Of a DNA stretch of 64,000 nt, positions 1,576-19,358 are shown in pieces. Both the position numbers and the translations under genes were made by a program. The notes under the pieces were generated by a model that was not told where the DNA came from, did not search any database, and saw nothing but the letters and a program-made list of their open reading frames with translations. The stretch spans positions 204,740 through 268,739 of the IMG/VR virus record IMGVR_UViG_3300032296_003307; one strand, 5' to 3'. Numbering within the stretch: the stretch's first letter is position 1; the number at the start of each line of letters is the position of its first letter.

Positions 1576-2128
1576 TCAAAAATTTTGTTTCATTTTCACT
1601 TAGATTTGTAACAAAATTTTTGATACTTTCTTGTTGGACTTCGCCAATCTCCCACACTTCATCAACATCTTCATCATTAACATCACTATCGTGATAATCG
1701 GTATCAACCAAATCACCGTAGTCATCTATGTATCCTTCACTTATTAGATAAAGTAGATTTGCCTCTAATTGAGTTGAATCCATAAAATAACCGTCAATTT
1801 CTTGTTCATAATATTTTGTGGACCATTCAGATTCATCTCTTTTGATGCGAGCGCCAAATGTTTTTTTAACAGGTACTTTCATGCTGTCTACCGTTAATGT
1901 GTCATCTTCTAAACGTTCTTTGTTTTCCGCCATCATGTTGTACCAAAAAAACATATCATCCATGTCTTCAGAGTTGGCATTTATTAACTTACCTCGTTTT
2001 TGTAAAAAATAATCAAAATCAGATTCACCCAAATCCCCATAAAAATCATCAACACTGGCATCCCCGTAGTCTTTTTTCCAAAGATTGAATAAGGTTTTTA
2101 ATTCTCTAAATAATTGTTCTTTATTCAT
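1520..2128 (-). CDS. Hypothetical acidic protein
   Basis: 202-aa ORF; its start overlaps the stop of the upstream GH19 gene. Confidence 0.65.
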   Translation of the reverse strand: MNKEQLFRELKTLFNLWKKDYGDASVDDFYGDLGESDFDYFLQKRGKLINANSEDMDDMFFWYNMMAENKERLEDDTLTVDSMKVPVKKTFGARIKRDESEWSTKYYEQEIDGYFMDSTQLEANLLYLISEGYIDDYGDLVDTDYHDSDVNDEDVDEVWEIGEVQQESIKNFVTNLSENETKFLIKKLLSNHRLGHPKSKSR

Positions 2129-2922
2129 TACGCAGTTGTTGCAATATCAAATTTTGGATTCATAGCCAATGCGGCTTTTCTTGACCAATCTGACCTTCTA
2201 TTTCCGGCGTTTATATCTGTAAAATAAATTGTTGCTGATTCTTTATCTTTAAAATCAGGTAATTTTTTTGGGTCTTTACCATTCAAGAAAAATGAGATGG
2301 CAACTTTTGCAGATATTTCCGGTTTTTCCAATAATTCAGGATTGTTTTCCAAATCCACGCCCGCTAATTTACCGTAGTGTCTATAATTTGCTCTTCCGGT
2401 AATTCCATTTAAACCACGCCCAACATATTTCCACCCATCACCTGGTTGAGTATTTCCCAATGGAACACCCGAATCCTTACCGTACACACAATCAAAAAAC
2501 TTTGGGTCATCACATTTTAAAGATTTGCACTTGGTCCCTCTAGCACCAAAAATACTAACAATTCTACTATCACTTGTGGTACAATAACCAAATTCTTTAA
2601 CAGCAACAAATCCTGATTCTTTACCAATAACAGATAAAATACCAATCTGTGCATATGGGTTTGTAATACCCATTTTTTCCATTTCTTGGATAGTCATATC
2701 GACCATTTTTGCGGCTTGACCTGAATAACTGTGTTTAATTTTTCCTGTTATTTTATTTTTTCCGATTGATTCGTTTTCTTTTGTTGATGGTGATGTTCCT
2801 CCACTATTGTTAGAAAATCCAAACATTTTTTTCGCCATACCCAACAAACTATCTTCAGGTTGTTCGTTGACACTCATGAGTTCTCTAACTCTATTTACTT
2901 CTTCAATAAGATTTTGTCTCAT
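2128..2922 (-). CDS. Glycoside hydrolase family 19 (chitinase/lysozyme-like) endolysin or virion lysin
   Basis: KESG catalytic region and GNTQPGDGWKYVGRGLNGITGRANY, the GH19 phage lysozyme signature. TATTTAT motif upstream on the sense strand (2927-2933). Confidence 0.85.
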   Translation of the reverse strand: MRQNLIEEVNRVRELMSVNEQPEDSLLGMAKKMFGFSNNSGGTSPSTKENESIGKNKITGKIKHSYSGQAAKMVDMTIQEMEKMGITNPYAQIGILSVIGKESGFVAVKEFGYCTTSDSRIVSIFGARGTKCKSLKCDDPKFFDCVYGKDSGVPLGNTQPGDGWKYVGRGLNGITGRANYRHYGKLAGVDLENNPELLEKPEISAKVAISFFLNGKDPKKLPDFKDKESATIYFTDINAGNRRSDWSRKAALAMNPKFDIATTA

Positions 2923-2970
2923 AACAATAAATAGCTTGTTTGTTTAAAAAATATTCAATACCTTTGTATT

Positions 2971-3138
2971 ATGATGCCACCAAAATATCTACAAGACCTA
3001 CTTGAAATGTATGACAAGAATCTAACAATGTTCGTAGGCGACGTACCTGTTTTGTTTTTCACCACCACAATTGTACGTGAGGAAGAAGAACCAACAAAAG
3101 CACCAAAAGATAATATTTTACAATGTTCAGCGGGATAA
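2971..3138 (+). CDS. Small hypothetical protein, 55 aa (MMPPKYLQDLLEMYDK...CSAG)
   Basis: Read by eye (below the ORF-track cutoff). Preceded by a TAccTTTG -7 element at 2959-2966. Confidence 0.55.
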   Translation: MMPPKYLQDLLEMYDKNLTMFVGDVPVLFFTTTIVREEEEPTKAPKDNILQCSAG

Positions 3139-3193
3139 CTTGACGCTTTTTTAAAATTGGATATATTTATATCAAAACAAATTAAAACTTTCA

Positions 3194-3262
3194 ATGAAAA
3201 CCATTTTCATATTCGGGACACCAGCAACAGAGGGTGATACTTCCAAAGTGGAGATGGGATAA
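3194..3262 (+). CDS. Putative attenuator leader peptide MKTIFIFGTPATEGDTSKVEMG
   Basis: 22 codons after a TATTTAT motif (3164-3170) and an A-rich leader. Its 3' end overlaps the antiterminator strand GAGATGGG. Confidence 0.7.
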   Translation: MKTIFIFGTPATEGDTSKVEMG

Positions 3263-3315
3263 TATTGTCTTTAAGACCTTAAGAAAACCCATCTCAAAAA
3301 GATGGGTTTTTTTTT
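3251..3315 (+). terminator. Intrinsic terminator with competing antiterminator
   Basis: Terminator AAAACCCATCT(3284-3294)/AGATGGGTTTT(3300-3310) plus a T9 run. Alternative 8-bp helix GAGATGGG(3251-3258)/CCCATCTC(3288-3295). Confidence 0.8.
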
Positions 3316-3322
3316 GGTTTAA

Positions 3323-3354
3323 TTTGGCAAATCAAAAATAAAGTTGTAATTTTG
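3323..3354 (+). promoter_or_regulatory. Bacteroidota housekeeping-sigma promoter (-33 TTTG / -7 TAnnTTTG) for the tRNA array
   Basis: TTTG at 3323-3326, 20-nt spacer, TAATTTTG at 3347-3354. Confidence 0.75.
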
Positions 3355-3388
3355 TATCGTTGTTGAAAGAAACATCTGAAACAACAAA

Positions 3389-3400
3389 GTTCTTTGACAT
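3389..3400 (+). promoter_or_regulatory. boxA-like antitermination element
   Basis: GTTCTTTGACAT resembles rrn boxA (TGCTCTTTAACA-type) and lies 15 nt before the first tRNA. Confidence 0.65.
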
Positions 3401-3415
3401 ATTGGAAAAACACAT

Positions 3416-3487
3416 GGCCCCTTCGTCTATCGGCTAGGACATATCCCTTTCACGGATAAAAGACGGGTTCGATTCCCGTAGGGGCTA
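3416..3487 (+). tRNA. tRNA-Glu(UUC)
   Basis: Acceptor GGCCCCT/AGGGGCT, anticodon arm TATCC-CTTTCAC-GGATA, T-loop TTCGATT. Confidence 0.95.
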
Positions 3488-3493
3488 CAAAAC

Positions 3494-3628
3494 ATCTCCG
3501 TAACTGTTAAAACGGTGAGTGGGTAAATGATGGTTGATTGGTCTGACACTACTTATACTAGTTTGTAGAGAAAAGTCAGAGCACTAAACAAGTAATTTAC
3601 AAGATGGGTTCGATTCCCATCGGAGATT
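3494..3628 (+). ncRNA. tRNA-like RNA with a greatly extended central arm
   Basis: Acceptor ATCTCCG/CGGAGAT, T-arm ATGGG-TTCGATT-CCCAT, mini D-arm ACTG/CGGT, nested helices GTAAAT/ATTTAC, TCTGAC/GTCAGA and CTAC/GTAG. Confidence 0.7.
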
Positions 3629-3634
3629 CAAAAT

Positions 3635-3708
3635 GCCACCATAGCTTTAATTGGTAGAGCACCTGACTTGTAATCAGGGGGTTGGCGGTTCGAATCCGTC
3701 TGGTGGCT
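3635..3708 (+). tRNA. tRNA-Thr(UGU)
   Basis: GCCACCA/TGGTGGC acceptor, CCTGA-CTTGTAA-TCAGG anticodon arm. Confidence 0.95.
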
Positions 3709-3757
3709 CAAACTCAAGGAGTAATTAACCTTGAACTGTCAGGTTCGAAACTGACGA

Positions 3758-3849
3758 TTGATTATGGTGTAATAGGGCACACTGGCCTTAGTTGCTTCTT
3801 AACAGAAGTGGACGGGGCTGGGGATTGGGTTCGATTCCCTTTAATCAGC
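3758..3849 (+). ncRNA. tRNA-like RNA with an elongated anticodon arm
   Basis: TTGATTA/TAATCAG acceptor, D-arm GTGT-AATAGG-GCAC, long arm CTGGCC...GCTTCT-TAAC-AGAAGT...GGCTGG, T-arm GGG-TTCGATT-CCC. Confidence 0.7.
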
Positions 3850-3853
3850 AAAT

Positions 3854-4382
3854 GACCCCACAATTAACAGTAGTACTCGACTGTTATGGTGTGTGAACCC
3901 GACTTGAAGTCTTCGGGGCTATGGGGGATAGATACACTTGACGTGAAATTTGTATAACCTCTTATAAACGGGGTTAACCGACATGGGGAAGTTCAGTCGG
4001 GTACATCGGGAACAAGTATGACTGAGTCCCCCATTATGGATTAAGGGGGTTAGGGGCTTTAATTAGTCGTAATACAATCCACAAGTTGTAGAAACACTGG
4101 ACAATTCTACAATATACACTCTTCTTCCGAGTGAGACCAGACACGTAACTATGTGGTAGGGTGAAGATGTCCTGAGGGTAATATCGTTGTTAATTGTAAG
4201 GCTTATGGTCCGAAAGGATAAGTTGAAACCCAAAGGCACAACGGTATGATAGTACAGACCTACCTTGGATGGTTACTATGTTCTGACGAATCTTGGAAAT
4301 ATAGGTAGGGATATTAATTCGCCAACTATTAAAACTTAAAGGTGTTCCTATAATGGCGTAGGGATGATTCAACACCTTTTTT
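3854..4382 (+). ncRNA. Large structured non-coding RNA candidate (~520 nt)
   Basis: No credible ORF, GC content above the flanks, many helices including a long-range 10-bp pairing 3860-3869/4188-4197. Confidence 0.6.
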
Positions 4383-4386
4383 ACAT

Positions 4387-4464
4387 CGCGGGATGGACTG
4401 GAGATGGTACCAGCTGAGTCTCATAAGCTCAATCACGGGGGTTCGAATCCCTCTCCCGCTACCA
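4387..4464 (+). tRNA. tRNA-Met(CAU), atypical (C1.U72 mismatch, encoded CCA)
   Basis: CGCGGGA/TCCCGCT-A-CCA, anticodon arm TGAGT-CTCATAA-GCTCA. Confidence 0.85.
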
Positions 4465-4467
4465 AAT

Positions 4468-4538
4468 CGTGGATTGGTGTAATGGTAACATATTGGGCTC
4501 ATAACCCAAAGTTCCGAGTTCGAGTCTCGGGTCCGCAA
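4468..4538 (+). tRNA. Initiator tRNA-fMet(CAU)
   Basis: C1.A72 mismatch and three consecutive G-C pairs in TTGGG-CTCATAA-CCCAA. Confidence 0.92.
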
Positions 4539-4544
4539 CTAAAT

Positions 4545-4584
4545 GCCGGAGGACTCCCATGATAGTCCCATGGGTCCGGCTCCA
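4545..4584 (+). ncRNA. CCA-ended tRNA minihelix-like element
   Basis: GCCGGA/TCCGGC stem stacked on CCCATG/CATGGG with a 7-nt loop, followed by T-CCA. Confidence 0.55.
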
Positions 4585-4585
4585 T

Positions 4586-4657
4586 GCGGGTGTCGTATAA
4601 AGGCTATTACTTCAGCCTTCCAAGCTGAAGATGGGAGTTCGATTCTCCCCACCCGCT
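4586..4657 (+). tRNA. tRNA-Gly(UCC)
   Basis: GCGGGTG/CACCCGC-T, TCAGC-CTTCCAA-GCTGA. Confidence 0.95.
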
Positions 4658-4662
4658 CAAAA

Positions 4663-4735
4663 GCGAGAGTGGCTCAGTTGGTAGAGCATGACCTTGCCAA
4701 GGTCAGGGTCGCCAGTTCGAACCTGGTCTCTCGCT
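4663..4735 (+). tRNA. tRNA-Gly(GCC)
   Basis: GCGAGAG/CTCTCGC-T, TGACC-TTGCCAA-GGTCA. Confidence 0.95.
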
Positions 4736-4805
4736 CGAATGTGAATCTTAAAAAGGGCACTTCCGTCTCGTTGAGCGGCACGCTGAGCCCGGATTCACAT
4801 ATCAC

Positions 4806-4877
4806 GGTCTCATAGTTAATCGGCTATAATATCGCCCTGTCACGGCGAAGTGCCGGGTTCGATTCCCGGTGGGACCG
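4806..4877 (+). tRNA. tRNA-Asp(GUC)
   Basis: GGTCTCA/TGGGACC-G, TCGCC-CTGTCAC-GGCGA. Confidence 0.95.
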
Positions 4878-5075
4878 CAAAATTCAGTCAGGGTCGAGCC
4901 ACGTTGTGCCACGACTGAATGATAGGTAAGGAAGGACAAGAGGTGGCCGTGACTACTCCTTACCGTTAATTTATGTATTTATTGGTATGTTTAAACGACT
5001 ACTAAAATACTTGGAATCAATAGAACAACACAGAATGAACGCCATTATTTTTGGTGGAAAAGGGTTGTTGTAGTT

Positions 5076-5149
5076 GGGCTGTTAGCTCAGATGGCTAGAG
5101 CACCTGCCTTGCACGCAGGGGGTCGAGAGTTCGAGTCTCTCACGGTCCA
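5076..5149 (+). tRNA. tRNA-Ala(UGC)
   Basis: G3.U70 pair, CCTGC-CTTGCAC-GCAGG. Confidence 0.95.
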
Positions 5150-5233
5150 CAAGATGAGTTTCCCTACACCTTTGGGTTAGTAACTAGTTAAAGGGGGACA
5201 AAAGTGGTATACAAGTCCACGACTCATCCACTT

Positions 5234-5310
5234 CGGGATGTTGGGGAGCCCGGTCACCCCGCCTGCTTTGGGAGCAGGAGAACTCGCAGGTTCGAATCCT
5301 GCCATCCCGA
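5234..5310 (+). tRNA. tRNA-Pro(UGG)
   Basis: CGGGATG/CATCCCG-A, CCTGC-TTTGGGA-GCAGG. Confidence 0.95.
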
Positions 5311-5354
5311 CAAAATTTTTTCAATATGTCAAAAACTTTTCTTATCTTTGTAAT

Positions 5355-5663
5355 ATGAAACAAAAAATTAATAAACTCGGTGCTTTGGTATCTGTAATGA
5401 TATGGTTTGTTCTTATAACCATCTTAGGTATCTTTTTGACTTCTTGTGGTAAGCCAAAGAACAGGATTGAAAAAGGTGATATTGTTCAGAAGTGTCAGAT
5501 TGATTCTATTAATGTTTTACCACAGCATTCAACAATCGAACCTGACAGGAAGTGTGAATATTTTACAAGTTGTGGAAGTAGAATTGTGTCACATGAAGGC
5601 GCTTTCAGGGTTGGTGATACTGTGACTTACGTATATAAGAAATCTAATAGTCAGAAAAACTGA
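5355..5663 (+). CDS. Putative lipoprotein
   Basis: The likely start is ATG 5355, after TAtcTTTG at 5343-5350. Hydrophobic stretch followed by lipobox LTSC. Confidence 0.7.
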   Translation: MKQKINKLGALVSVMIWFVLITILGIFLTSCGKPKNRIEKGDIVQKCQIDSINVLPQHSTIEPDRKCEYFTSCGSRIVSHEGAFRVGDTVTYVYKKSNSQKN

Positions 5664-6300
5664 TTAACTTTTTTATACGGTTCATAGATTCTGTCATACC
5701 GTCTTGGTAATCATATTTTCCAACATAAACGTCAGGATATTGTACGGTAATTGGATATTTTTTGCCGATTCTTTCCATAATATCATCCTGAATCGCTTCA
5801 GGACTATTCTCACTTAAATCGTCAAGTTCTGATTGAAACATACTTACTTTTTCTTCAAATTCAAAATCACCAAATTCTAAATTTGGGTAATATTTTTCAA
5901 CCACTTCATCCATTTTATTTGTATTTAAATCTCCAATAGTAACTACCGTTCCGTCGGCCATTTTTACAGTGCTGTTTGGATAAATTAAAACAGAATCTAA
6001 TTCTAAATCGTACGAAATTAAAATAGATGAAGTACGTATTGGTTCAATAGCATAATTCGTAACTTTATAAATTAATTTGGCGTAAGGGGTTTCTACAATT
6101 CCGGGGTTTTCAATTACCTCAGAAATAAGTTTAAAATAGTTTTTTTCACCACCGTAATATTCAACAATATAAGGTAAAAAATCTTCCAAGCCCCAACTTT
6201 CTTTCCCTATAAATCTTGAAACTTGATTTAAATTATATACATCAACACCTCTGGCATCCCAAAGTTTAAATAGTACTTTTTTTTCTTGGTCTGTTAACAT
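5644..6300 (-). CDS. Hypothetical protein, paralog of 6302-7084
   Basis: Shares KKxLxxxWxxxG, YYGG and PxST motifs and the C-terminal ESxxRIKxLISFSDY with its neighbour. Confidence 0.75.
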   Translation of the reverse strand: MLTDQEKKVLFKLWDARGVDVYNLNQVSRFIGKESWGLEDFLPYIVEYYGGEKNYFKLISEVIENPGIVETPYAKLIYKVTNYAIEPIRTSSILISYDLELDSVLIYPNSTVKMADGTVVTIGDLNTNKMDEVVEKYYPNLEFGDFEFEEKVSMFQSELDDLSENSPEAIQDDIMERIGKKYPITVQYPDVYVGKYDYQDGMTESMNRIKKLISFSDY

Positions 6301-6301
6301 A

Positions 6302-7084
6302 TTAATAATCTGAAAAAGATATTAAATTTTTTATTCTAATTACTGACTCGTTCAGATTTCCCAAATCAAAATCAACAATTTCAACTTTTGGTATATTTGG
6401 TTTTGGTGTAGGTGATGTTTGAACAAAAAATTTTTCTCGGGCAATTTTATTTAAGTAATCACTGGCGTTTTCTTTAATAGTTTCAATTAGTTCCTTAAAA
6501 TCTCCGTATATTTCTTTTTGATATTGTATATATTCTTCGCTACCAACTTCAATTTGAGGTAAATATTTTTCCATAAGTTGTTTGATTCCTAAATTTTTGA
6601 TTTCCAAAACAGGAATATATGTTGTTTCCCTGTTAAGGGTTGTGAACTTAAGAGTTGAACTTGGATGTAAATAAATTTTTTTCAAATACATTTTTGTGTT
6701 TTTAGGAACGCCATTATCATAGTAGGTTTGTACTAATTGTATGTCACCTAATTTTAAAAAAATGGTACCCATTGGGTTAATTAACGAACGGTCTTTTTTT
6801 GTTTCCTTTTTATAGACACCAAACTCCTGTAATATTTTTTCTTTGTATTTTTCTAATCCGCCGTAGTAATCAAAAAATAAATCGGTATAATATTCAGGTT
6901 GTAATTTATCTTTTGTGTAATAACCCACAAAACGTAAATCGCTTTCTAACCTATTTGGGTCAAAACCTTTTTTATTCCAAATAATGGATAGGATTTTTTT
7001 CTGATTTGGTGTTAATCTAGGTTCTCTTAAACCAAAAATTTTTTTTAGGTCAAATTCGTTAATTAGAGAAATTTTATTACCCAT
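6302..7084 (-). CDS. Hypothetical protein, paralog of 5644-6300
   Basis: Same shared motifs as 5644-6300. TATTTAT on the sense strand at 7091-7097. Confidence 0.75.
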   Translation of the reverse strand: MGNKISLINEFDLKKIFGLREPRLTPNQKKILSIIWNKKGFDPNRLESDLRFVGYYTKDKLQPEYYTDLFFDYYGGLEKYKEKILQEFGVYKKETKKDRSLINPMGTIFLKLGDIQLVQTYYDNGVPKNTKMYLKKIYLHPSSTLKFTTLNRETTYIPVLEIKNLGIKQLMEKYLPQIEVGSEEYIQYQKEIYGDFKELIETIKENASDYLNKIAREKFFVQTSPTPKPNIPKVEIVDFDLGNLNESVIRIKNLISFSDY

Positions 7085-7149
7085 GATTTTATAAATATTT
7101 GTTTTTTTAATTAAACTGATATATATTTGTAAGGTAATGTAATAAAGAT

Positions 7150-7278
7150 ATGGGAAAGTTCAGTTATGATGACTTTAACGAGGAAGAACAACCACGTAAA
7201 GGGTCAAGAAACGACAAAAAAGAGAGCAAGAAACCTAAACTTACAGACAAAACAAAAAAACCTAAAAAACCGAAATAA
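7150..7278 (+). CDS. Small Lys-rich basic protein (42 aa)
   Basis: MGKFSYDDFNEEEQPRKG...KKPKKPK, downstream of the promoter TTTG(7098-7101)-N20-TATATTTG(7122-7129). Confidence 0.6.
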   Translation: MGKFSYDDFNEEEQPRKGSRNDKKESKKPKLTDKTKKPKKPK

Positions 7279-7280
7279 CA

Positions 7281-7481
7281 ATGTCAAACAAAGAAAAAAA
7301 ACCAATTAATGCGGAAAATCTACAGAAGATTTCAAACGGAAATGAAATCCACATTAATATTGGAAAAAAATTCTTTGATATGGGTGATGTTGAGGTCATA
7401 GAAATACAAAGACCCAAAGAACCCGTCTACGGTGAAGATGAGTGGGATAATATACACGGAGATATAGTACACTTCACCTAA
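7281..7481 (+). CDS. Small hypothetical protein
   Basis: 66-aa ORF starting 2 nt after the upstream stop. Confidence 0.6.
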   Translation: MSNKEKKPINAENLQKISNGNEIHINIGKKFFDMGDVEVIEIQRPKEPVYGEDEWDNIHGDIVHFT

Positions 7482-7488
7482 TCAATAT

Positions 7489-7562
7489 AGACGGGTGGCG
7501 CAATAGGTTAGCGCAGGATTCTTATACAATCAAGGTTACGGGTTCAAGTCCCGTCTCGTCTA
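7489..7562 (+). tRNA. tRNA-Ile(UAU)
   Basis: AGACGGG/CTCGTCT-A, anticodon loop CTTATAC, T-loop TTCAAGT. Confidence 0.88.
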
Positions 7563-7566
7563 CTTC

Positions 7567-7640
7567 GGGCCTTTAGCTCAGTCGGTCAGAGCAGGACACT
7601 CATAATGTCAAGGTCGTAGGTTCGAACCCTACAAGGCCCA
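7567..7640 (+). tRNA. tRNA-CAU (probably Ile2/lysidine type; elongator Met not excluded)
   Basis: GGGCCTT/AAGGCCC-A, anticodon loop CTCATAA, paired 1:72. Confidence 0.85.
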
Positions 7641-7691
7641 CAAATTATAATTTTATTCCTTTTTTTATTGAGTTATCCATATTTATTTATT

Positions 7692-8318
7692 ATGGATTTT
7701 ACTCAGATTATTATTACCCTGTTAACTTCAATTACTTCTGTTATTGTTGCACTTATAACCGCAGGGTTTATTCGTAGAAAAGATGACAAAGCAAAGGCGG
7801 AAAAATCTAAAAAACAATTAATAGACCAAATTCAAAAAGACGAGTTGATTCACGCAACTCTAAGGGAAATAAGAAGAAAATATAACGCTGATAGAGTATT
7901 CATAACTCAGTTCCATAACGGAGGTACGTTTTATACTAATTCACCAATGCAGAAAGCGTCGGTAACATACGAAAGATGTTCAGATGGATTAAAAAGAATT
8001 GCTGACCAATTTCAGAATTATTTGGTGAGCAATCTTTCTTGGTACGCATCTAAAGTACTTAAAAACCAAGCTTTTTTTTATGACATTGATGAAGTTGTTG
8101 ACGATATAATAATGAAAAGTGTTTTTAAAAATTACTCTACGTGGGCACACGCCGCGGTTCCAATAATGGATAATAATAAAAATCCCATAGCGGTACTTGC
8201 CATGGATTGGGTCATATCAGAACTACCTGTTGAGTATGTCGATGATGAAGATTTTAACGATGAGTTTACCGAAGAATTTACAAAAGACGGAAATTCCTTA
8301 AAAACATACTTAATGTGA
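7692..8318 (+). CDS. Membrane-anchored GAF-like protein, candidate holin
   Basis: Start MDFTQ after TATTTAT 7680-7686. One N-terminal TM helix, then a GAF-like pattern (NADRVFITQFHNG...AVPI...PIAVLAMD). Confidence 0.55.
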   Translation: MDFTQIIITLLTSITSVIVALITAGFIRRKDDKAKAEKSKKQLIDQIQKDELIHATLREIRRKYNADRVFITQFHNGGTFYTNSPMQKASVTYERCSDGLKRIADQFQNYLVSNLSWYASKVLKNQAFFYDIDEVVDDIIMKSVFKNYSTWAHAAVPIMDNNKNPIAVLAMDWVISELPVEYVDDEDFNDEFTEEFTKDGNSLKTYLM

Positions 8319-8330
8319 TATTTATAATAT

Positions 8331-8960
8331 ATGTCTGACATTATTGCAGGAAATTTTCAGTGGAAGTCTAACGGAGGTCCTCGTAATCACCCATCAGGTT
8401 CTTGGAAATTATCTAATGCGTGGGATTTAGAGTCCAGAGAGGGTAATGATGTGTTTTCCGCTGTTAATGGAATGGTAACCGAAAAACAAAGTCCGTCAAC
8501 ACCAGGTCATCTGTATGGTACATCGATAACTATAAGAGGTGAAGGTTCCTACCCAACTATTTTTTATAGTAATTTAAGTTCTGTAAATGTTAACGTAGGG
8601 TCACAAGTTAGAGTCGGTGATAAACTAGGTGAAATTGCAAACGCGCCGGCAGGTACATCCCCTTATATACACATAGCTCTACCAATTGGAAAAGATATAA
8701 CATCGATTATAAGTAACAACGGTTCTTTTGTATCTCCATCTGGTTCATCTTCAGGTGTTGAGGATGCCGCGGTCGCCGCAGGAGCCGCAGGAGCGACTGC
8801 GTTGGCTAGTGGTGATGGTAAAAAAGATAATGGAGATGGTGGAAGTTTTATGGACAAATTTTATGGTACTTTAACCAAAGGTTTATTACCCTTTGGATTA
8901 GTTACGGGTGTTGCCGGTATGAAAGAAGAGGTCGAAAGAATTAAAGAACTTATGAAATAA
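8331..8960 (+). CDS. M23 peptidase-like protein
   Basis: DL...VFSAVNGMV...YGTSITI...YSNL...VNVGSQVRVGDKLG...PYIHI matches the M23 fold pattern; the metal-binding motifs are partly degenerate. Confidence 0.7.
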   Translation: MSDIIAGNFQWKSNGGPRNHPSGSWKLSNAWDLESREGNDVFSAVNGMVTEKQSPSTPGHLYGTSITIRGEGSYPTIFYSNLSSVNVNVGSQVRVGDKLGEIANAPAGTSPYIHIALPIGKDITSIISNNGSFVSPSGSSSGVEDAAVAAGAAGATALASGDGKKDNGDGGSFMDKFYGTLTKGLLPFGLVTGVAGMKEEVERIKELMK

Positions 8961-8988
8961 AAAAACCCACTCAGAGTGGGTTTTTTTA
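8961..8988. terminator. Bidirectional intrinsic terminator
   Basis: A-run, CCCACT-CAG-AGTGGG, T-run, between convergent genes. Confidence 0.8.
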
Positions 8989-9005
8989 ATGTTGTTAATT
9001 ACTGA

Positions 9006-12891: not shown

Positions 12892-14298
12892 ATGCCAAGA
12901 TTTATTCTAACAGAACAAGAAAGAAAAAGGATTCTTGAATTATATCTAAATGAACAAGTGGCTCAAATACCATACCCAACTGGTGTTACTAAAGCCGCGG
13001 TAGACAAAATACTATCTATTTCGGCACAAAATAAAAAAGGTTTAAGAGGTTCTTATTTGGCTCCTTTACAACAACAAGAAATAGACAAAGAATTTGGTAA
13101 AGATACTTTTAAGAAATTTTTTGATGGTGGCGGTAGAGACGTTTTAGACGGAAAAAAAACATTCAAAGATAGTTCTATACCGGAAATTTTAAATTGTGTA
13201 AGATTTGATGAAAAAGATGGAGACACAATGGGAACCTATACTAACGGTAAAAAATATGTTAGAGTTTTTAATCCAAACAGTATTCAAGTTTTTTGGGAGA
13301 CAGGGGCTTTTCAACAATTTGTACGTAAATCGGATAACTCTGCAGGTTCATTAACTAAAAGTGGTACATACGCATGTAACGCACAAAAGAACGATGTGGT
13401 AATTAGCGCCACCGATACAGGTGCAAATACCGGTTCAGTAAATCTTGATTGTGTAAGATTTGATGAAAAAGATGGAGACACAATGGGAACCTATACTAAC
13501 GGTAAAAAATATGTTAGAGTTTTTAATCCAAACAGTATTCAAGTTTTTTGGGAGACAGGAGAATTTCAACAATTTGTGCGTAAAGCAGACAACTCCGCAG
13601 GTCCATTAACTAAAAGCGGAAAATGGTCTTGTAACGCAACAAAAGATAACGTTGTAATAGACACCAACCAAACCGGTTCTACATCAAACAAGACTGAGTG
13701 GATGACATATTTAACTGACTCAGTTTTTAATGGTAAATCAAAACAATATCTAAAATATAAAGACCAAGACTCTGTTTATTTCCCTGATTCTAAAACATAT
13801 TATACTGAGAAAGAATGGTTTACCGTTGATGATTCAGGAAATGTGACAAAATCAGGATATTGGTTCCAAGACAAAAATAAACCTCAAAACAGCCAGTTTA
13901 CGCAAGGTGAAGGTAAAAATCCAAATGAAAAAACTGTTACAGTTGCACCTCCTTTAGAAAATGTTGCAAAAGGAACCGCAAGTATGAAACAGGGTAACCA
14001 AGGTGATTCTGTAAAAACATTACAACAAATGTTAATAGATAAAGGATATTTAAAAATCAATAATCCAACTAATTACTTTGGTAATATGACCTACAATGCG
14101 GTTCTACAGTTCCAAAAAGACAGTCTTTTGAAAAAACAAGATGGTATCGTTGGTTATGAAACATATACTGCCTTGTATAGAGCCCCTGAAGTTCAAAAAA
14201 CACCTGATGTGAACATACAACCAAAAGGAATACAAGCTCAACCACTTTCGTCCGAAACCCCAAAGACACCTACCCAAATAACAATACCCAATAGATAA
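12892..14298 (+). CDS. Protein with a tandem-duplicated domain and C-terminal peptidoglycan-binding domain
   Basis: GNQGDSVKTLQQML...FGNMTYNAVLQFQ...DGIVGYETY matches PG_binding_1; internal 85-aa-period duplication. Confidence 0.8.
   Translation: MPRFILTEQERKRILELYLNEQVAQIPYPTGVTKAAVDKILSISAQNKKGLRGSYLAPLQQQEIDKEFGKDTFKKFFDGGGRDVLDGKKTFKDSSIPEILNCVRFDEKDGDTMGTYTNGKKYVRVFNPNSIQVFWETGAFQQFVRKSDNSAGSLTKSGTYACNAQKNDVVISATDTGANTGSVNLDCVRFDEKDGDTMGTYTNGKKYVRVFNPNSIQVFWETGEFQQFVRKADNSAGPLTKSGKWSCNATKDNVVIDTNQTGSTSNKTEWMTYLTDSVFNGKSKQYLKYKDQDSVYFPDSKTYYTEKEWFTVDDSGNVTKSGYWFQDKNKPQNSQFTQGEGKNPNEKTVTVAPPLENVAKGTASMKQGNQGDSVKTLQQMLIDKGYLKINNPTNYFGNMTYNAVLQFQKDSLLKKQDGIVGYETYTALYRAPEVQKTPDVNIQPKGIQAQPLSSETPKTPTQITIPNR
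13193..13640 (+). repeat. Direct intragenic duplication, period 255 nt
   Basis: 13193-13304 is identical to 13448-13559 (112 nt); similarity continues with mostly third-position changes. Confidence 0.95.
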
Positions 14299-14299
14299 G

Positions 14300-16306
14300 T
14301 TAAACTTTTTCTATCTTAATTATTTCGTCAAATTTCAAGACGTAATTTTCACCTTCAATTACATTACCAACCAAGTATTCTTCTGAAATATAATCTTCAA
14401 CTTCATCTTGAATCGCTCTTTTAATCGGTCTGGCACCGAATGTTTCGTCAAACCCGACTTTGGCAATATGTTCAATTATGGTATCGTCAAATTCAAAGTT
14501 AAGTTTTAATTCTGTTAACCTGTCTTTAAGTTTTACTATTTCCAATTTAACAATTTTTTCAATTTCGGGTTGTTTCAAAGAGTTAAAAACAATAACTTCA
14601 TCAATACGATTTAAAAATTCAGGAGAGAAATAATTTTTCATTTCTTTTTGAAGAATTTGACGCTTGTACTCTTCTTGTGTTGAAGAGCTTGATGCGGTTG
14701 AAAAACCAATCTGAGTTCCAAAATCTTGTAATTTTTTAACCCCTAAGTTTGAAGTCATAATAATCAAACAATTTTTAAAGTTGATTTTTCTACCTAAAGA
14801 ATCAGTTAAATGACCTTCATCTAACATCTGTAACAATGTGTTAAAGATTTCTTTGTTTGCCTTTTCAACTTCATCAAACAGAATTACCGAATAAGGTTTG
14901 TTCTTAACTTGTTCGGTTAACTGTCCACCTTCATCGTAACCAACATAACCAGGAGGAGCACCAATCAATTTGGAAATGGTGTGTTTTTCTTGAAACTCAG
15001 ACATATCTACACGGATAAGATTGTCTTCACTACCAAAGATTTGTTTTGCCAATTGTTTTGCCAAGTGAGTCTTACCAACACCTGTTGAACCCAAGAAAAT
15101 GAATGAACCGATAGGTTTATTTGGGTCTTTAATTCCCAACCTATTTCTGCGAATTGATTTTGCAATTTTGGTAACCGCCTCATCTTGTCCAATAACTTTG
15201 TCCATCAGAGATTTGTCTAAGGCAATTAAGTTTGTTTTATCATCAACAGATATTTTAGAAACAGGAATTTTAGTCATAGAAGAAACGACATCCAAAACAA
15301 GTTCAGGTAAAATCTCGCGTTTCTTTTCTGACATTTCTATCTCATACCTTTCCTTTTCATTTTCTAACTTACTGGCAATTTTTTTCTCTTTGTTCCGTAA
15401 TTCTGCCGCCTCTTCATATTTTTGTCTTTTCACAACATCTTTTTTCTTTTCACTTATTTCTCTGAGTTGTGCGGTAAGTTTTTCTATGATTTCAGGTACT
15501 TTGGCCTCTACTTGTGCACGAGCACCAACCTCATCCATAATGTCAAACGCTTTGTCAGGAAACTCTCTGTCGGTAATGTATCTATCAGCCAAATTAACAC
15601 AAAGCTCAAGTACTTCATCAGAATAACTTACTTTGTGATATTCTTGATACTTTGTTCTTAGATTTTTAAGAATTAATAATGTTTCTTTTTTTGATGGTGA
15701 ATCAACAACTACTTTTTGAAATCTGCGTTCTAACGCACCGTCTTTTTCAAAGTTTGTTCTGTATTCATCTAGTGTTGTTGCTCCGATACATTGAATTTCA
15801 CCACGAGCAAGGGCGGGTTTAAATATATTAGAGGCGTCCATAGAGCCCGATGCGTTACCCGCACCAACTATAGTATGAATTTCATCGATAAAAACAATAA
15901 TTTCGGGGTTTTTTGACAATTCTTCAATAATTACTTTTAATCTTTCTTCAAACTGACCACGATATTTTGTTCCAGCAACAATTGATGTCATATCCAATAG
16001 AACAATCCTCTTACTCAATAAGTTACGTGGACAATCACCATTAAAAATTTTCATGGCGAGACCTTCAACAATTGCGGTTTTACCACAACCTGGCTCTCCT
16101 ATGATTATTGGATTGTTTTTCTTTCTTCTTGAAAGAATTTGAGCAATTCGTTGTATTTCACGTTCTCTACCAATTACAGGGTCTAATCTACCTTCTGACG
16201 CCAATTTTATTAGGTCTTTTGAGAAGTTATCCAATACGGGTGTAGATGAACTGTTACGTCTACTTTGCGGTTTTACATTTTCGTTGTCGTCCATTGATTC
16301 AATCAT
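14300..16306 (-). CDS. clpC: ClpC/ClpA-type AAA+ chaperone lacking the Clp N-terminal domain
   Basis: Two Walker A motifs (GEPGCGKT, GSTGVGKT), pore loops KYRG and GYVG, UVR-like middle domain and IGF ClpP-docking loop. Start MIES follows TATATTTG at 16318-16311. Confidence 0.92.
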   Translation of the reverse strand: MIESMDDNENVKPQSRRNSSSTPVLDNFSKDLIKLASEGRLDPVIGREREIQRIAQILSRRKKNNPIIIGEPGCGKTAIVEGLAMKIFNGDCPRNLLSKRIVLLDMTSIVAGTKYRGQFEERLKVIIEELSKNPEIIVFIDEIHTIVGAGNASGSMDASNIFKPALARGEIQCIGATTLDEYRTNFEKDGALERRFQKVVVDSPSKKETLLILKNLRTKYQEYHKVSYSDEVLELCVNLADRYITDREFPDKAFDIMDEVGARAQVEAKVPEIIEKLTAQLREISEKKKDVVKRQKYEEAAELRNKEKKIASKLENEKERYEIEMSEKKREILPELVLDVVSSMTKIPVSKISVDDKTNLIALDKSLMDKVIGQDEAVTKIAKSIRRNRLGIKDPNKPIGSFIFLGSTGVGKTHLAKQLAKQIFGSEDNLIRVDMSEFQEKHTISKLIGAPPGYVGYDEGGQLTEQVKNKPYSVILFDEVEKANKEIFNTLLQMLDEGHLTDSLGRKINFKNCLIIMTSNLGVKKLQDFGTQIGFSTASSSSTQEEYKRQILQKEMKNYFSPEFLNRIDEVIVFNSLKQPEIEKIVKLEIVKLKDRLTELKLNFEFDDTIIEHIAKVGFDETFGARPIKRAIQDEVEDYISEEYLVGNVIEGENYVLKFDEIIKIEKV

Positions 16307-16343
16307 ACCACAAATATACAACTATGTTTCATATTATCAACTA

Positions 16344-17548: not shown

Positions 17549-18301
17549 ATGGCAATTGATAAAGAAATAATTAACTCTTTTGAACCCAAGGATAAATTAA
17601 ATCCAAAAATTTGGTATACACCAAAAGGGGAAGATACACCAAAATTACAACCTGAAGTTAGAACCGCATTACTTAAATCGGCTCAACTTTTTATTGAGTA
17701 CGTAAAAGTAGATTTTTTCTTTTCGGATATTATTATGCCTGGTTCTTTAGCAAATTACAATTGGTCAAAGTATTCAGATGCGGATGTTCACATCATTGTT
17801 AATTTAGACCAATTTGATAGAGATGAAATTCCTTTATACCAAGAGTTATTTAAAATTAAAAAAACACTTTTTAATAATACTCATAACATTAAAGTTAGGG
17901 GATATGATGTTGAAATGTATATCGAAGATAGTTCTGTCCCAAGATTTTCAGAAGGAACATACTCAATAATGTTTGATGAATGGATTTCGGTTCCAAAAAA
18001 AGAAGAATTTAAAATAGATAAAGAACTTTTAAAAAAGAAAACTAAGAATTGGATGGACCAAATTGATTTGGTAATTAGCCAAACAAAAAAAGAAGATGTT
18101 GATGATATACGTGATTTGTTTAAAAAGATTGATGATAAGTTAAAAAAATATAGAACGGAAGGTCTTAGACAAGGTGGTGAGCAATCTTATGAAAATTTAG
18201 TATTTAAAATTTTAAGAAGAAATGGGTATATTGGAAAGATGAAAGACTACGAAACTGAATTCGTTGATAAAAAGTTATCGGTTGAACAAACTGAAGAATA
18301 A
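17549..18301 (+). CDS. Pol-beta-superfamily nucleotidyltransferase
   Basis: GSLANYNWSKYSDADVH (GS...DxD) and a third acidic residue in YDVEMY. Start MAIDK follows TATTTAT at 17537-17543. Confidence 0.75.
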   Translation: MAIDKEIINSFEPKDKLNPKIWYTPKGEDTPKLQPEVRTALLKSAQLFIEYVKVDFFFSDIIMPGSLANYNWSKYSDADVHIIVNLDQFDRDEIPLYQELFKIKKTLFNNTHNIKVRGYDVEMYIEDSSVPRFSEGTYSIMFDEWISVPKKEEFKIDKELLKKKTKNWMDQIDLVISQTKKEDVDDIRDLFKKIDDKLKKYRTEGLRQGGEQSYENLVFKILRRNGYIGKMKDYETEFVDKKLSVEQTEE

Positions 18302-18341
18302 TTAAATATTCATTAAGTAACGCATATTTATATAGAAAAAA

Positions 18342-19358
18342 ATGGCTTTAGTAACATATACCATAGCACCATGTGCAGGAGGGAGCACATTAGATGTTGA
18401 ATTTAGTGGCTCATCTTTACCCGTGGTCGGCGGGAATTATTATTTAACCTTTACAGGTGCGACAACTCAAGGTTGTTATGAAATTGTTGATACTTCAGAA
18501 CCAGGAACTGGTTCGGATAAAGTTGATACTATGTCAACAAATTATGGTGATTGTGCGACTTGTTTGACGGCAAATCCAACCCCAACCCCAACACCAACAG
18601 TATCCTTGACTCCATCGGTAACCAAGACACCAACCAATACCCCGACTCAAACCAAAACACAGACACAAACACCAACTAAAACACCAACCCAAACTAAAAC
18701 ACCTACAAACACTCCAACACCTACCACAACACCTTCTACTTGCTTTTCAGCAATAACCGACACTACAAATTGGTATTATACAGATTGTTGCGGTAACTTT
18801 CAAGGAGGAAATGAAATAGGTATTACTGTTTGTGTTGATAGTACTAAACCTAATTCGGGTTTGGCAATTTTGGTAGATTTTCCGTGTAGTCAATCATGCC
18901 CTACACCAACACCAACAGCTTCAGTAACTAAAACACCAACAAACACACCAACTAATACACCAACTAAAACATCAACACCAACTAATACACCAACTAAAAC
19001 TCAAACACCTACAAAAACAACAACAAACACACCAACACCTTCACAAACACAAACTAAGACACCAACTAATACACCAACACCAACCAATACACCAACTAAA
19101 ACATCAACCCCAACAATAACACCAACTAAAACCCCTACACAAACGTCAACACCTACACCCTCATTTACTCCCTTTTATTCGATTGAAACAGGTTCTGAGT
19201 ATTTTATGTGTGTAATTTGTCCCGACGAAGGATTAACAGGTTATACCTATACACCAACAACAGTTCCACATCCAGCAGCAGCAAACGCACAGGAAAACGT
19301 AACTATATACCAAAGAGGTGCAGTCGTAATTGGCGGACCTGATGGATTAAACTCATAA
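18342..19358 (+). CDS. Thr/Pro-repeat (mucin-like) protein with small Cys-rich modules; putative virion surface protein
   Basis: Two long (TPT/TKT/TNT)n tracts separated by Cys-rich motifs. Confidence 0.7.
   Translation: MALVTYTIAPCAGGSTLDVEFSGSSLPVVGGNYYLTFTGATTQGCYEIVDTSEPGTGSDKVDTMSTNYGDCATCLTANPTPTPTPTVSLTPSVTKTPTNTPTQTKTQTQTPTKTPTQTKTPTNTPTPTTTPSTCFSAITDTTNWYYTDCCGNFQGGNEIGITVCVDSTKPNSGLAILVDFPCSQSCPTPTPTASVTKTPTNTPTNTPTKTSTPTNTPTKTQTPTKTTTNTPTPSQTQTKTPTNTPTPTNTPTKTSTPTITPTKTPTQTSTPTPSFTPFYSIETGSEYFMCVICPDEGLTGYTYTPTTVPHPAAANAQENVTIYQRGAVVIGGPDGLNS

Follow-up and report, generated by a model that had tools for sequence, protein, structure and literature searches.

Results

Organization of the region upstream of the phage tRNA array

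The window analyzed here is a 64,000-nucleotide stretch (positions 204,740 to 268,739) of the IMG/VR virus record IMGVR_UViG_3300032296_003307, and all features described below with window coordinates lie on its plus strand. Using ARAGORN, we detected a tRNA array at 3416-5311 that comprises Glu-UUC, Thr-UGU, Leu-UAG, two tRNAs with a CAU anticodon, Gly-UCC, Gly-GCC, Asp-GUC, Ala-UGC and Pro-UGG, and further downstream, at 7489-7641, a tRNA-Ile(UAU) and an additional CAU tRNA. Whether the distal pair belongs to the same transcript is unknown; a separate promoter-like site is present at 7098-7129, with small ORFs between. An earlier note on this sequence had recognized a short ORF, a terminator and a codon-to-tRNA match in front of the array, and our analysis confirms these observations. 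However, the note missed the tRNA-Leu(UAG) at 3758-3849, so that seven of eight non-Met tRNA species, and not seven of seven, are represented among the leader codons. This slot is variable; it is empty in two relatives (designated L014 and L005) and holds Val-GAC in three others (L018, L025 and L034). Likewise, the tRNA at 7567-7641, regarded in the note as an Ile tRNA, has the anticodon CAU and not an Ile anticodon.

The leader ORF extends from the ATG at 3194 through 22 sense codons to a TAA stop codon at 3260-3262, and is preceded by an A-rich 5' UTR of about 19 nt that lacks a Shine-Dalgarno sequence. Upstream of it lies a predicted promoter, P1 (3140-3169), which consists of TTGACG (3140-3145), a 16-nt spacer, and TATATT within a -7 box reading TATATTTA (3162-3169), so that transcription is expected to start near 3175. 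The TATTTAT motif (3164-3170) highlighted in the earlier note is part of this host-type -7 box. P1 was the best sigma-70-like match between positions 2000 and 9000 (10 of 12 positions), reads TTGACA in nearly all close relatives, and is conserved in the relatives L035, L037 and L040 although the upstream gene differs. It fits the Bacteroidota sigma-A pattern (-33 TTTG, -7 TAnnTTTG; PMC7366714; PMC9723704) with a TTG, 19 nt and TATATTTA, matching 7 of 8 positions in the -7 box.

Downstream of the leader ORF, a terminator scan identified a 14-pair stem at 3281-3313 followed by a T run. The 5' arm of this terminator (AAAACCCATCT), together with the first loop bases, is designated r3 (3284-3296), while its 3' arm (AGATGGG) and the run of 9 T constitute r4 (3300-3315); the hairpin alone folds at -16.1 kcal/mol. 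A second predicted promoter, P2 (3323-3354), composed of TTTG, a 20-nt spacer and TAATTTTG, follows the terminator and is an exact match to TTTG-N17-22-TAnnTTTG. It is conserved in relatives but absent from most of the other leader families described below. Between P2 and the array lies a hairpin with the stem GTTGTT/AACAAC (3359-3385), whose stem is conserved whereas its loop differs in length and sequence in L035, L037, L040 and L041. There is no covariation in this stem, and a boxB-like role can be inferred only from its position.

A boxA-like 20-mer (GTTCTTTGACATATTGGAAA, 3389-3408) is positioned 7 nt before tRNA-Glu. The exact 20-mer occurs in 109 IMG/VR contigs, usually just upstream of tRNA genes, and in Bacteroidota genomes it is found in the 16S-23S spacer: 70 of 122 hits are within 2.5 kb downstream of a 16S 3'-end motif. 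A function of the 20-mer as a promoter was rejected, since it lies 6-12 nt from the tRNA 5' ends and sits in host rRNA spacers.

Codons 8-15 of the leader match the downstream tRNAs

Codons 8-15 (3215-3238) of the leader are GGG, ACA, CCA, GCA, ACA, GAG, GGT and GAT, and these are cognate to Gly-UCC, Thr-UGU, Pro-UGG, Ala-UGC, Thr-UGU, Glu-UUC, Gly-GCC and Asp-GUC, respectively. In addition, codon 6 (ATA) is cognate to the distal tRNA-Ile(UAU). While 35% of the phage's codons are read by these tRNAs, none of 17,291 eight-codon windows in the long ORFs is fully covered with seven or more species, and a random 22-codon ORF achieves this with p=2.6e-4. Among 396 ATG-ORFs of 15-45 codons in all six frames of the window, the leader is the only one with a covered run of eight or more codons. 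It should be kept in mind that both the wobble rules and the ARAGORN calls used in these analyses are simplifications.

Mutually exclusive RNA helices are predicted

The segment GAGATGGG (3251-3258) in the last codons of the leader can pair with CCCATCTC (3288-3295) in the terminator's 5' arm, as the earlier note had described. The complete 5' strand of this predicted antiterminator, r2 (GGAGATGGG, 3250-3258), forms a duplex with r3 of -15.1 kcal/mol, against -7.8 for the control 3' arm (shuffle p=0.003). The antiterminator (-14.8 kcal/mol) and the terminator (-16.1) exclude each other, and the antiterminator is the minimum-energy fold until the 3' arm of the terminator has been made. The helix is 9 bp in most relatives, which carry an extra C in the terminator loop. 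r2 ends 3 nt before the end of the stop codon, a position where a terminating ribosome would mask it. A 30-nt ribosome footprint with the A site on codon 8 spans 3203-3232 and leaves r2 free; with the A site on codon 15 it spans 3224-3253 and clips the 5' end of r2, leaving a 5-bp remnant of the helix. A trp-like 1:2 helix remains doubtful. A tentative segment r1 (3201-3210) can pair with 3248-3257 in the full-length minimum-energy fold of 3170-3330, but this is not the preferred fold before the terminator's 3' arm is made, and L040 carries two disruptive changes in it. As the partial transcript prefers the antiterminator in the absence of a ribosome, the default state of the predicted switch is unclear.

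Conservation of the leader module in relatives

The roughly 280-nt module is almost invariant in L035, L037, L040 and L041, where the endolysin is only 55-67% identical, the upstream gene is an aminotransferase or the endolysin itself, and tRNA-Glu has diverged with compensatory changes. The leader ORF and both helices are kept in more than 20 sequence variants, and also in distant relatives (L035, L037, L040, L041 and L042) with a different flanking gene. The ORF is open in all 16 aligned variants; the three changes seen in codons 8-15 are all synonymous third-position changes (GGG>GGA, ACA>ACG, GCA>GCG), whereas amino-acid changes occur at codons 2, 4 and 22. r2 is kept even in the relative L246, where the stop codon lies 5' of it. 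A homologous 24-codon leader is present in L047, L072, L125, L181 and L202.

Across the homologous family, 92% of cells are paired in the antiterminator and 95.5% in the terminator. The helices hardly vary; only one compensatory pair was found in the antiterminator (in L047; 94 of 500 shuffles reach this) and none in the terminator. One variant (L018/L025) weakens the antiterminator without compensation, and L026 changes its last G. Searches for DNA similarity to GenBank phages found only tRNA genes and nothing for the leader module, and no cultured relative was found among them; a 47-nt boxA query recovered only near-matches in Lak megaphages, which show a promoter plus boxA-like elements without a leader. 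IMG/VR searches with the neighboring genes returned only the source contig. No Rfam match at E<=1 other than tRNAs and weak chance hits was found in 2800-8000, and the leader peptide has no GxxxxGK pattern that would point to a decayed P-loop NTPase N-terminus.

Recurrence of the layout in other leader families

At least 11 further leader families in IMG/VR, with unrelated peptides, share the layout of a host-type promoter, a short ORF, a segment at the ORF's 3' end that pairs with the terminator's 5' arm, a terminator, an rRNA-type boxA and a tRNA array. In 10 of 12 families, the ORF's 3' end pairs far better with the terminator's 5' arm than with the control 3' arm (mean difference -5.6 kcal/mol, Wilcoxon p=0.0012), and in 8 of 12 families the pairing runs on into the terminator loop (p=0.003). 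The distance from r2 to the end of the stop codon is 1-18 nt for most family representatives (27 and 26 nt in the representatives L067 and L128). In most families the terminator abuts boxA and the first tRNA, leaving no room for a promoter, so the terminator would be the gate.

Leaders represent more of their array's tRNA species than random windows of the same phage's genes (Fisher-combined p=1.9e-13, or 9.5e-12 without the window). For instance, the leader L055 represents 9 of 9 species, and L044 represents 14 of 17 species with a run of 12; L085 and L128, in contrast, match their partly captured arrays poorly. Across 13 leader-array pairs, own-array Z scores average 2.44, against 1.01 for other arrays, and the own-array match exceeds every one of 20,000 permutations (p<=5e-5). 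Within the homologous family, the window type has GTPATEGD with Glu/Thr/Gly/Gly/Asp/Ala/Pro, while the L072 type has LRGLAIAED with Leu-UAA/Gly/Glu/Asp/Arg-UCU. The enrichment is confined to codons upstream of r2, with a value of 0.62 against 0.45 near or within r2 and a background of 0.41 (p=0.004).

Notably, the same phage, which carries 26 tRNA genes, has a second leader 5.3 kb before the window, in front of the Phe-to-Met cluster (L001 18225-18318, minus strand). It has a 10-bp r2:r3 helix, and its terminator abuts boxA and tRNA-Phe. This leader samples 13 of 14 tRNA species of its own clusters and not those of the window's cluster, and the two leaders are reciprocally specific (Fisher p=0.0013). 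In its homologues, the amino acids change but the codons stay array-cognate.

Discussion

The data reported here, all of them computational, lend themselves to a model in which the 22-codon ORF is probably the leader peptide of a ribosome-mediated transcription attenuator that samples several of the tRNAs encoded downstream at once. In this model, P1 starts a transcript near 3175, and a ribosome translates the leader while RNA polymerase moves on. When the tRNAs needed for codons 8-15 (and ATA at codon 6) are plentiful, the ribosome would reach the last codons or the stop codon and cover r2; r3 would then pair with r4, and transcription would end at the T run (3307-3315). When any sampled tRNA is scarce, the ribosome would wait upstream and leave r2 bare, so that r2 pairs with r3 as soon as r3 emerges and the terminator cannot form. 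Polymerase would consequently run on, pass the rRNA-type boxA and transcribe the array, and the tRNAs made would relieve the stall, thereby exerting negative feedback on tRNA supply. Translation of the leader, the control of read-through by stalling, an action of Nus factors at boxA and the biological trigger are all inferred, and transcription-translation coupling has not been shown in Bacteroidota. Leader-peptide attenuation has been inferred in Bacteroidota hosts (PMC9723704; PMC7366714).

This interpretation agrees with that of the earlier note, and is supported by the conservation of the module, the co-variation of leader codons with array content, the chance calculation and the folding analysis that the note had called for. 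Its suggestions that the switch operates late in infection and that an anticodon nuclease provides the trigger are either not supported or not testable by our analyses. The note had also cautioned that P2 would reduce the attenuator to a conditional addition. P2 indeed means that the switch is not essential for array expression in this lineage, where it would add a basal input that bypasses the switch, but in most other lineages the attenuator would be the only route from the nearest promoter.

One might alternatively view the region as ordinary punctuation, in which a small gene or a chance ORF is followed by a terminator that insulates the tRNA operon, with P2 as the real promoter. P2 is a perfect host-type promoter just downstream of a strong terminator, and an 8-mer repeat near a hairpin can arise by chance. 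We nevertheless consider this view improbable, as the ORF is unique among 396 small ORFs, the module travels with the array and not with the upstream gene, the layout and codon match recur in unrelated families, and no promoter fits between terminator and first tRNA in most families and at this phage's own second leader. It is still less probable that the unit from P1 to the terminator is a stand-alone gene for a roughly 140-nt small RNA or a micropeptide whose position next to the array is incidental. Its own promoter and terminator, nucleotide-level conservation that includes synonymous sites, and a fold z-score of -5.5 are in line with such a view. However, there is no Rfam match, and peptides are unrelated between families and change freely in the second leader's homologues while array-cognate codons are kept; this reading explains neither the codon-array specificity nor the r2:r3 design.

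A further possibility is that the attenuator is real but reports overall ribosome or elongation capacity, or coupling to RNA polymerase, with the codon match being a by-product of the phage's codon preferences. The geometry alone needs only a lagging ribosome, the leaders are diverse peptides without runs of a single codon, and they score above background against other phages' arrays. We regard this as unlikely in view of the permutation results, the end of the enrichment at r2, and the fact that two leaders in one genome, with the same codon usage, each match only their own cluster. The latter finding also led us to reject codon optimization of a highly expressed small gene. Finally, the main input might be aminoacylation, since a stalled ribosome cannot tell a missing tRNA from an uncharged one, and mixed-codon leaders appear to exist in the thr and ilv operons. 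This seems to us a remote alternative: making more tRNA does not relieve amino-acid starvation, so the feedback would be pointless, and the codon sets track the downstream tRNA genes species by species, including isoacceptors such as Gly-UCC versus Gly-GCC and Ile-UAU versus Ile-GAU.

The leader-peptide attenuators of amino-acid biosynthesis operons (trp, his, leu, pheA, thr and ilvGMEDA) in Enterobacteria, and those inferred in Flavobacterium and Bacteroides, possess, as is inferred for the phage leader, a short translated leader, an intrinsic terminator, an alternative helix that shares one strand with the terminator and is masked by a ribosome at the end of the leader, and regulatory codons that name the end product; the thr and ilv leaders probably already mix codons for two or three amino acids. 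In the proposed phage system, the regulated genes are tRNA genes and not enzymes, so that the sensed molecule is itself the product; the leader samples 7-14 different tRNA species, mostly once each, instead of runs of one codon; it occurs once per tRNA cluster; it is followed by an rRNA-type boxA; and a conserved 1:2 helix is not evident. Like the proposed phage attenuator, T-box riboswitches sense tRNA status through a codon-anticodon interaction and choose between terminator and antiterminator, but they bind one uncharged tRNA directly, need no ribosome, and control aminoacyl-tRNA synthetase and amino-acid genes in Firmicutes and Actinobacteria. The boxA-like 20-mer is identical to the element in the 16S-23S spacer of many Bacteroidota genomes and, as in rRNA operon antitermination (boxA with NusB/NusE, NusA and NusG), lies in the transcript between promoter and structured RNA genes; here, however, it occurs in phages in front of tRNA arrays and lies downstream of a terminator that is presumably regulated.

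Phage tRNA arrays have been discussed as codon-usage compensation or as counter-defense against tRNA-cleaving host systems, and such cleavage and phage responses to it are documented, for example for Septu, which cleaves tRNA-Tyr (PMC13096335). That literature deals with tRNA content and sequence, and in the literature searched we found no precedent for a sensor controlling array transcription. How phages control their tRNA genes is almost unknown, even though tRNA arrays are common in large phages. A leader that samples many codons at once would be the first attenuator whose sensed molecule is the direct product of the regulated genes, the first known feedback control of tRNA gene transcription by tRNA supply, and a natural multi-input sensor of tRNA pools that offers a compact part for tRNA-responsive reporters. 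The findings also suggest that phages copy the host rRNA-operon boxA to drive tRNA arrays. More likely than not, phages of Bacteroidota regulate each of their tRNA gene clusters with its own codon-sampling leader peptide, which would read the supply of exactly the tRNA species encoded downstream and open transcription when any of them runs short. This would amount to a homeostat for phage tRNAs, and possibly an alarm for host tRNA depletion or cleavage, and, as at least 12 unrelated leader families share the design, it would be either old or repeatedly invented.

Organization of the leader region and the tRNA gene cluster

The sequence features on which the earlier note based its proposal are all present. 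An ATG start codon at 3194 opens a 22-codon ORF that ends with a TAA stop codon at 3260-3262; the segment GAGATGGG is found at 3251-3258 and its pairing partner CCCATCTC at 3288-3295, and a 14-pair hairpin followed by a T run is positioned at 3281-3315. ARAGORN detected ten tRNA genes at 3416-5311 and two additional ones at 7489-7641, and codons 8-15 of the ORF are each cognate to one of the tRNAs encoded by this array. Three points in the earlier note require correction. It had overlooked a 92-nt tRNA-Leu(UAG) gene at 3758-3849, and it had assigned both distal tRNAs to Ile, although the one at 7567-7641 possesses the anticodon CAU. Furthermore, the TATTTAT sequence, listed in the note as a promoter motif, is part of a host-type promoter and not of a phage-specific one. 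This promoter (P1) consists of TTGACG (3140-3145), a spacer of 16 nt, and TATATT within TATATTTA, and it was the best promoter-like site in the region 2000-9000.

The slot between tRNA-Thr and the first CAU tRNA (3710-4386), in which tRNA-Leu(UAG) resides, turned out to be variable. It is empty in the related loci L014 and L005 and is occupied by tRNA-Val(GAC) in the related loci L018, L025 and L034, without any change in the leader. This points to a rapid gain and loss of single tRNA genes within one phage population. The neighboring genes encode a GH19-type endolysin (2128-2922, minus strand), an M23 peptidase (8331-8960, plus strand), a protein with a peptidoglycan-binding domain (12892-14298, plus strand), and a ClpB-like double AAA+ ATPase of 673 aa (14300-16321, minus strand), the last of which is an unusual cargo for a phage.

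The match between the codons of the leader and the downstream tRNAs is unlikely to have arisen by chance. The tRNAs of the array read 35% of the codons in the long ORFs of the window, yet none of the 17,291 eight-codon windows in these ORFs is fully covered with seven or more tRNA species, and a random 22-codon ORF achieves this with p=2.6e-4. Among the 396 ATG-initiated ORFs of 15-45 codons in all six frames of the window, the leader is the only one with a covered run of eight or more codons.

The window represents the last 64 kb of a 268.7-kb IMG/VR contig, and two lines of evidence point to a host belonging to the Bacteroidota. Its promoters fit the Bacteroidota sigma-A consensus, -33 TTTG and -7 TAnnTTTG (PMC7366714, PMC9723704), with an exact match at 3323-3354 (P2). 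In addition, the 20-mer GTTCTTTGACATATTGGAAA at 3389-3408 is identical to an element present in the 16S-23S spacer of many Chitinophagaceae, Sphingobacteriales and Bacteroidales genomes. It looks like the boxA of the host rRNA operon, copied by phages to drive tRNA arrays.

Conservation of the leader module in related phages

Close relatives, retrieved from contigs carrying the 55-aa ORF upstream of the module, are at least 90% identical and keep the leader almost unchanged. Five independent short-read contigs (Logan contigs L008-L012) end inside the leader ORF at the same place, at about 3243-3250, which suggests an assembly-graph branch caused by strain variation just downstream, around 3283-3300. 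More distant relatives were reached through homologues of the GH19 endolysin. In two of these, L035 and L037, an aminotransferase gene replaces the 55-aa ORF, and in a third, L040, the endolysin gene itself abuts the module; tRNA-Glu has diverged, with compensatory changes in its stems. Yet the stretch from P1 through the ORF, the terminator, P2, a hairpin and the 20-mer is almost invariant. The module thus travels with the array and is more constrained than the tRNA gene next to it. Among the relatives, L042 carries a tRNA with the anticodon CUA (5291-5363; amber-reading and labeled Pyl by ARAGORN), and L041 possesses a 94-nt tRNA-Glu(CUC) (2223-2316) in place of Glu-UUC; these may indicate suppressor or intron-containing tRNAs.

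The amino acid substitutions found in the leader ORF are K2R, I4K, I4M and G22V. In the close and more distant relatives whose codons 8-15 were inspected individually, only the synonymous third-position changes GGG>GGA, ACA>ACG and GCA>GCG were observed in this segment, each of which keeps the same tRNA. In L042, a GGG>GGC change moves codon 8 from Gly-UCC to Gly-GCC.

The exact 20-mer occurs in 109 IMG/VR contigs of very different phages, almost always a few nucleotides before a tRNA gene. Three of these loci (L047, L072 and L125), together with L181, L202 and L246, carry a clear homologue of the leader present in the window, with the same promoter, the same MK start, the same r2 (the antiterminator strand near the 3' end of the ORF), the same r3 and r4 (the 5' and 3' arms of the terminator), and 24 codons, but with different central codons. 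In L246, the stop codon lies just 5' of r2, and r2 is still kept, which argues that r2 is conserved as RNA rather than as coding sequence. Support from compensatory changes is weak, as only one such change within the family supports the antiterminator and it is not significant, and two variants weaken the helix without compensation.

A shared layout in leaders with unrelated peptides

Upstream of the 20-mer, we found about a dozen further leader families that share a host-type promoter, an ORF of 20-39 codons with an unrelated peptide, an intrinsic terminator, and a segment at or near the 3' end of the ORF that is complementary to the 5' arm of the terminator. When the 3' arm of the terminator was used as an internal control, the upstream region paired better with the 5' arm in 10 of 12 families, with a mean difference of -5.6 kcal/mol (Wilcoxon p=0.0012). 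One might suspect that r2 is merely a copy of the 3' arm; however, in 8 of 12 families the r2:r3 helix continues into bases that are unpaired in the terminator loop (p=0.003), and r2 is therefore more than such a copy.

In most families, the T run is 1-8 nt away from the 20-mer, and the 20-mer is 6-12 nt away from the first tRNA, so that no promoter fits between the terminator and the tRNA. The terminator must therefore be passable under some conditions. In the lineage of the window, in contrast, P2 bypasses the switch. A large group of 40-80 kb contigs, comprising the IMG/VR loci L046, L050, L054, L057 and about 30 similar ones, shares a conserved, GC-richer element in the roughly 130 nt directly upstream of the 20-mer; it begins with TGCGTTGAATTCATGCGCC and has no Rfam match. 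The megaphage Lak-A2 of Prevotella (2440-2640 of locus L386) has two host-type promoters, each of which is followed by a boxA-like sequence (GTTCTTTGACATATTGA and TGTTCTTTGAAATTTTGA), but it possesses neither a leader ORF nor a terminator at this site. Among the phages in GenBank, no cultured phage was found to carry the module.

Co-variation of leader codons with the content of the tRNA arrays

For each leader, we compared its codons with the tRNAs found downstream in the same locus, using conservative wobble rules. Leaders represent more of the tRNA species of their array than random windows of equal length from the long ORFs of the same locus. This was the case for the window (p=0.001) and for the leader loci L067 and L142 (5e-5 each), L055 (0.002; 9 of 9 species) and L044 (0.004; 14 of 17 species, with a covered run of 12). 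Although some arrays are only partly captured and two families match poorly, the p-value combined over one representative per family is 1.9e-13, or 9.5e-12 without the window. The match is specific, as the Z scores for the leaders' own arrays average 2.44 for species and 1.61 for codons, against 1.01 and 0.17 for other arrays, and none of 20,000 permutations reaches the observed value.

Co-variation is also apparent within the homologous family. The window type reads GTPATEGD and precedes Glu, Thr, Gly, Gly, Asp, Ala and Pro tRNAs, while the L072 type reads LRGLAIAED and precedes Leu-UAA, Gly-UCC, Glu, Asp and Arg-UCU tRNAs. The enrichment of cognate codons is confined to those located upstream of r2, where their fraction amounts to 0.62, against 0.45 near or within r2 and a background of 0.41 (p=0.004). 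This is what the geometry of the ribosome footprint predicts.

A second leader in the same phage genome

The phage has 26 tRNA genes. Its other large cluster lies 5.3 kb before the start of the window and encodes, in this order, Phe, Ile-GAU, Gln, Lys, Val, Tyr, Cys, His, Arg, Trp and Met tRNAs. This cluster is preceded by its own candidate leader-attenuator (L001, a locus of this phage, 18120-18379, minus strand; at about 199.3 kb of the contig), with a leader of 31 codons at 18225-18318 on the minus strand. Its r2, GAGTTCGGGT, pairs perfectly with ACCCGAACTC, the last two bases of which lie in the terminator loop, and the terminator abuts the 20-mer and tRNA-Phe. This second leader represents 13 of the 14 species in its own clusters and almost none of the window's cluster, whereas the window's leader does the reverse (Fisher p=0.0013). 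Since the two leaders share codon usage and genome, codon optimization cannot explain the match. In the homologues of the second leader (L040 and L042), a ten-codon core is invariant, while the flanking codons change the amino acid but mostly stay cognate to the array. This is the pattern expected of a codon sampler and not of a functional peptide.

Predicted folding of the alternative helices

The antiterminator alone folds at -14.8 kcal/mol and the terminator alone at -16.1 kcal/mol. Before the 3' arm is transcribed, the minimum-energy fold contains r2:r3, and this holds with or without a ribosome footprint on codon 8; with a footprint on the stop codon, only the terminator remains. The fold of the full-length transcript pairs r2 with 3201-3210. 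However, this helix is not favored co-transcriptionally and is disrupted in L040, and we therefore regard it as unproven.

Relation to known regulatory systems

The device described here would work like the trp/his class of leader-peptide attenuators, and it agrees with this class in every sequence-level criterion that we could test, with the reservation that compensatory changes within the family offer little support and that an anti-antiterminator (1:2) helix remains unproven. It differs in what it controls (tRNA genes), in what it senses (many tRNA species, mostly through one codon each), in where it sits (a phage, once per tRNA cluster), and in its coupling to an rRNA-type boxA. It is not a T-box. 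In the literature that we searched, no report was found of a leader peptide or an attenuator controlling phage or bacterial tRNA genes; leader-peptide attenuation in Bacteroidota has been inferred only for amino-acid operons (PMC9723704) and for long 5' UTRs (PMC7366714). The features seen in the earlier note are confirmed, and its interpretation as an attenuator is supported by evidence that is comparative and not experimental. With reasonable though not full confidence, we consider negative feedback of tRNA supply on tRNA gene transcription, exerted through ribosome stalling, to be the most likely mechanism.
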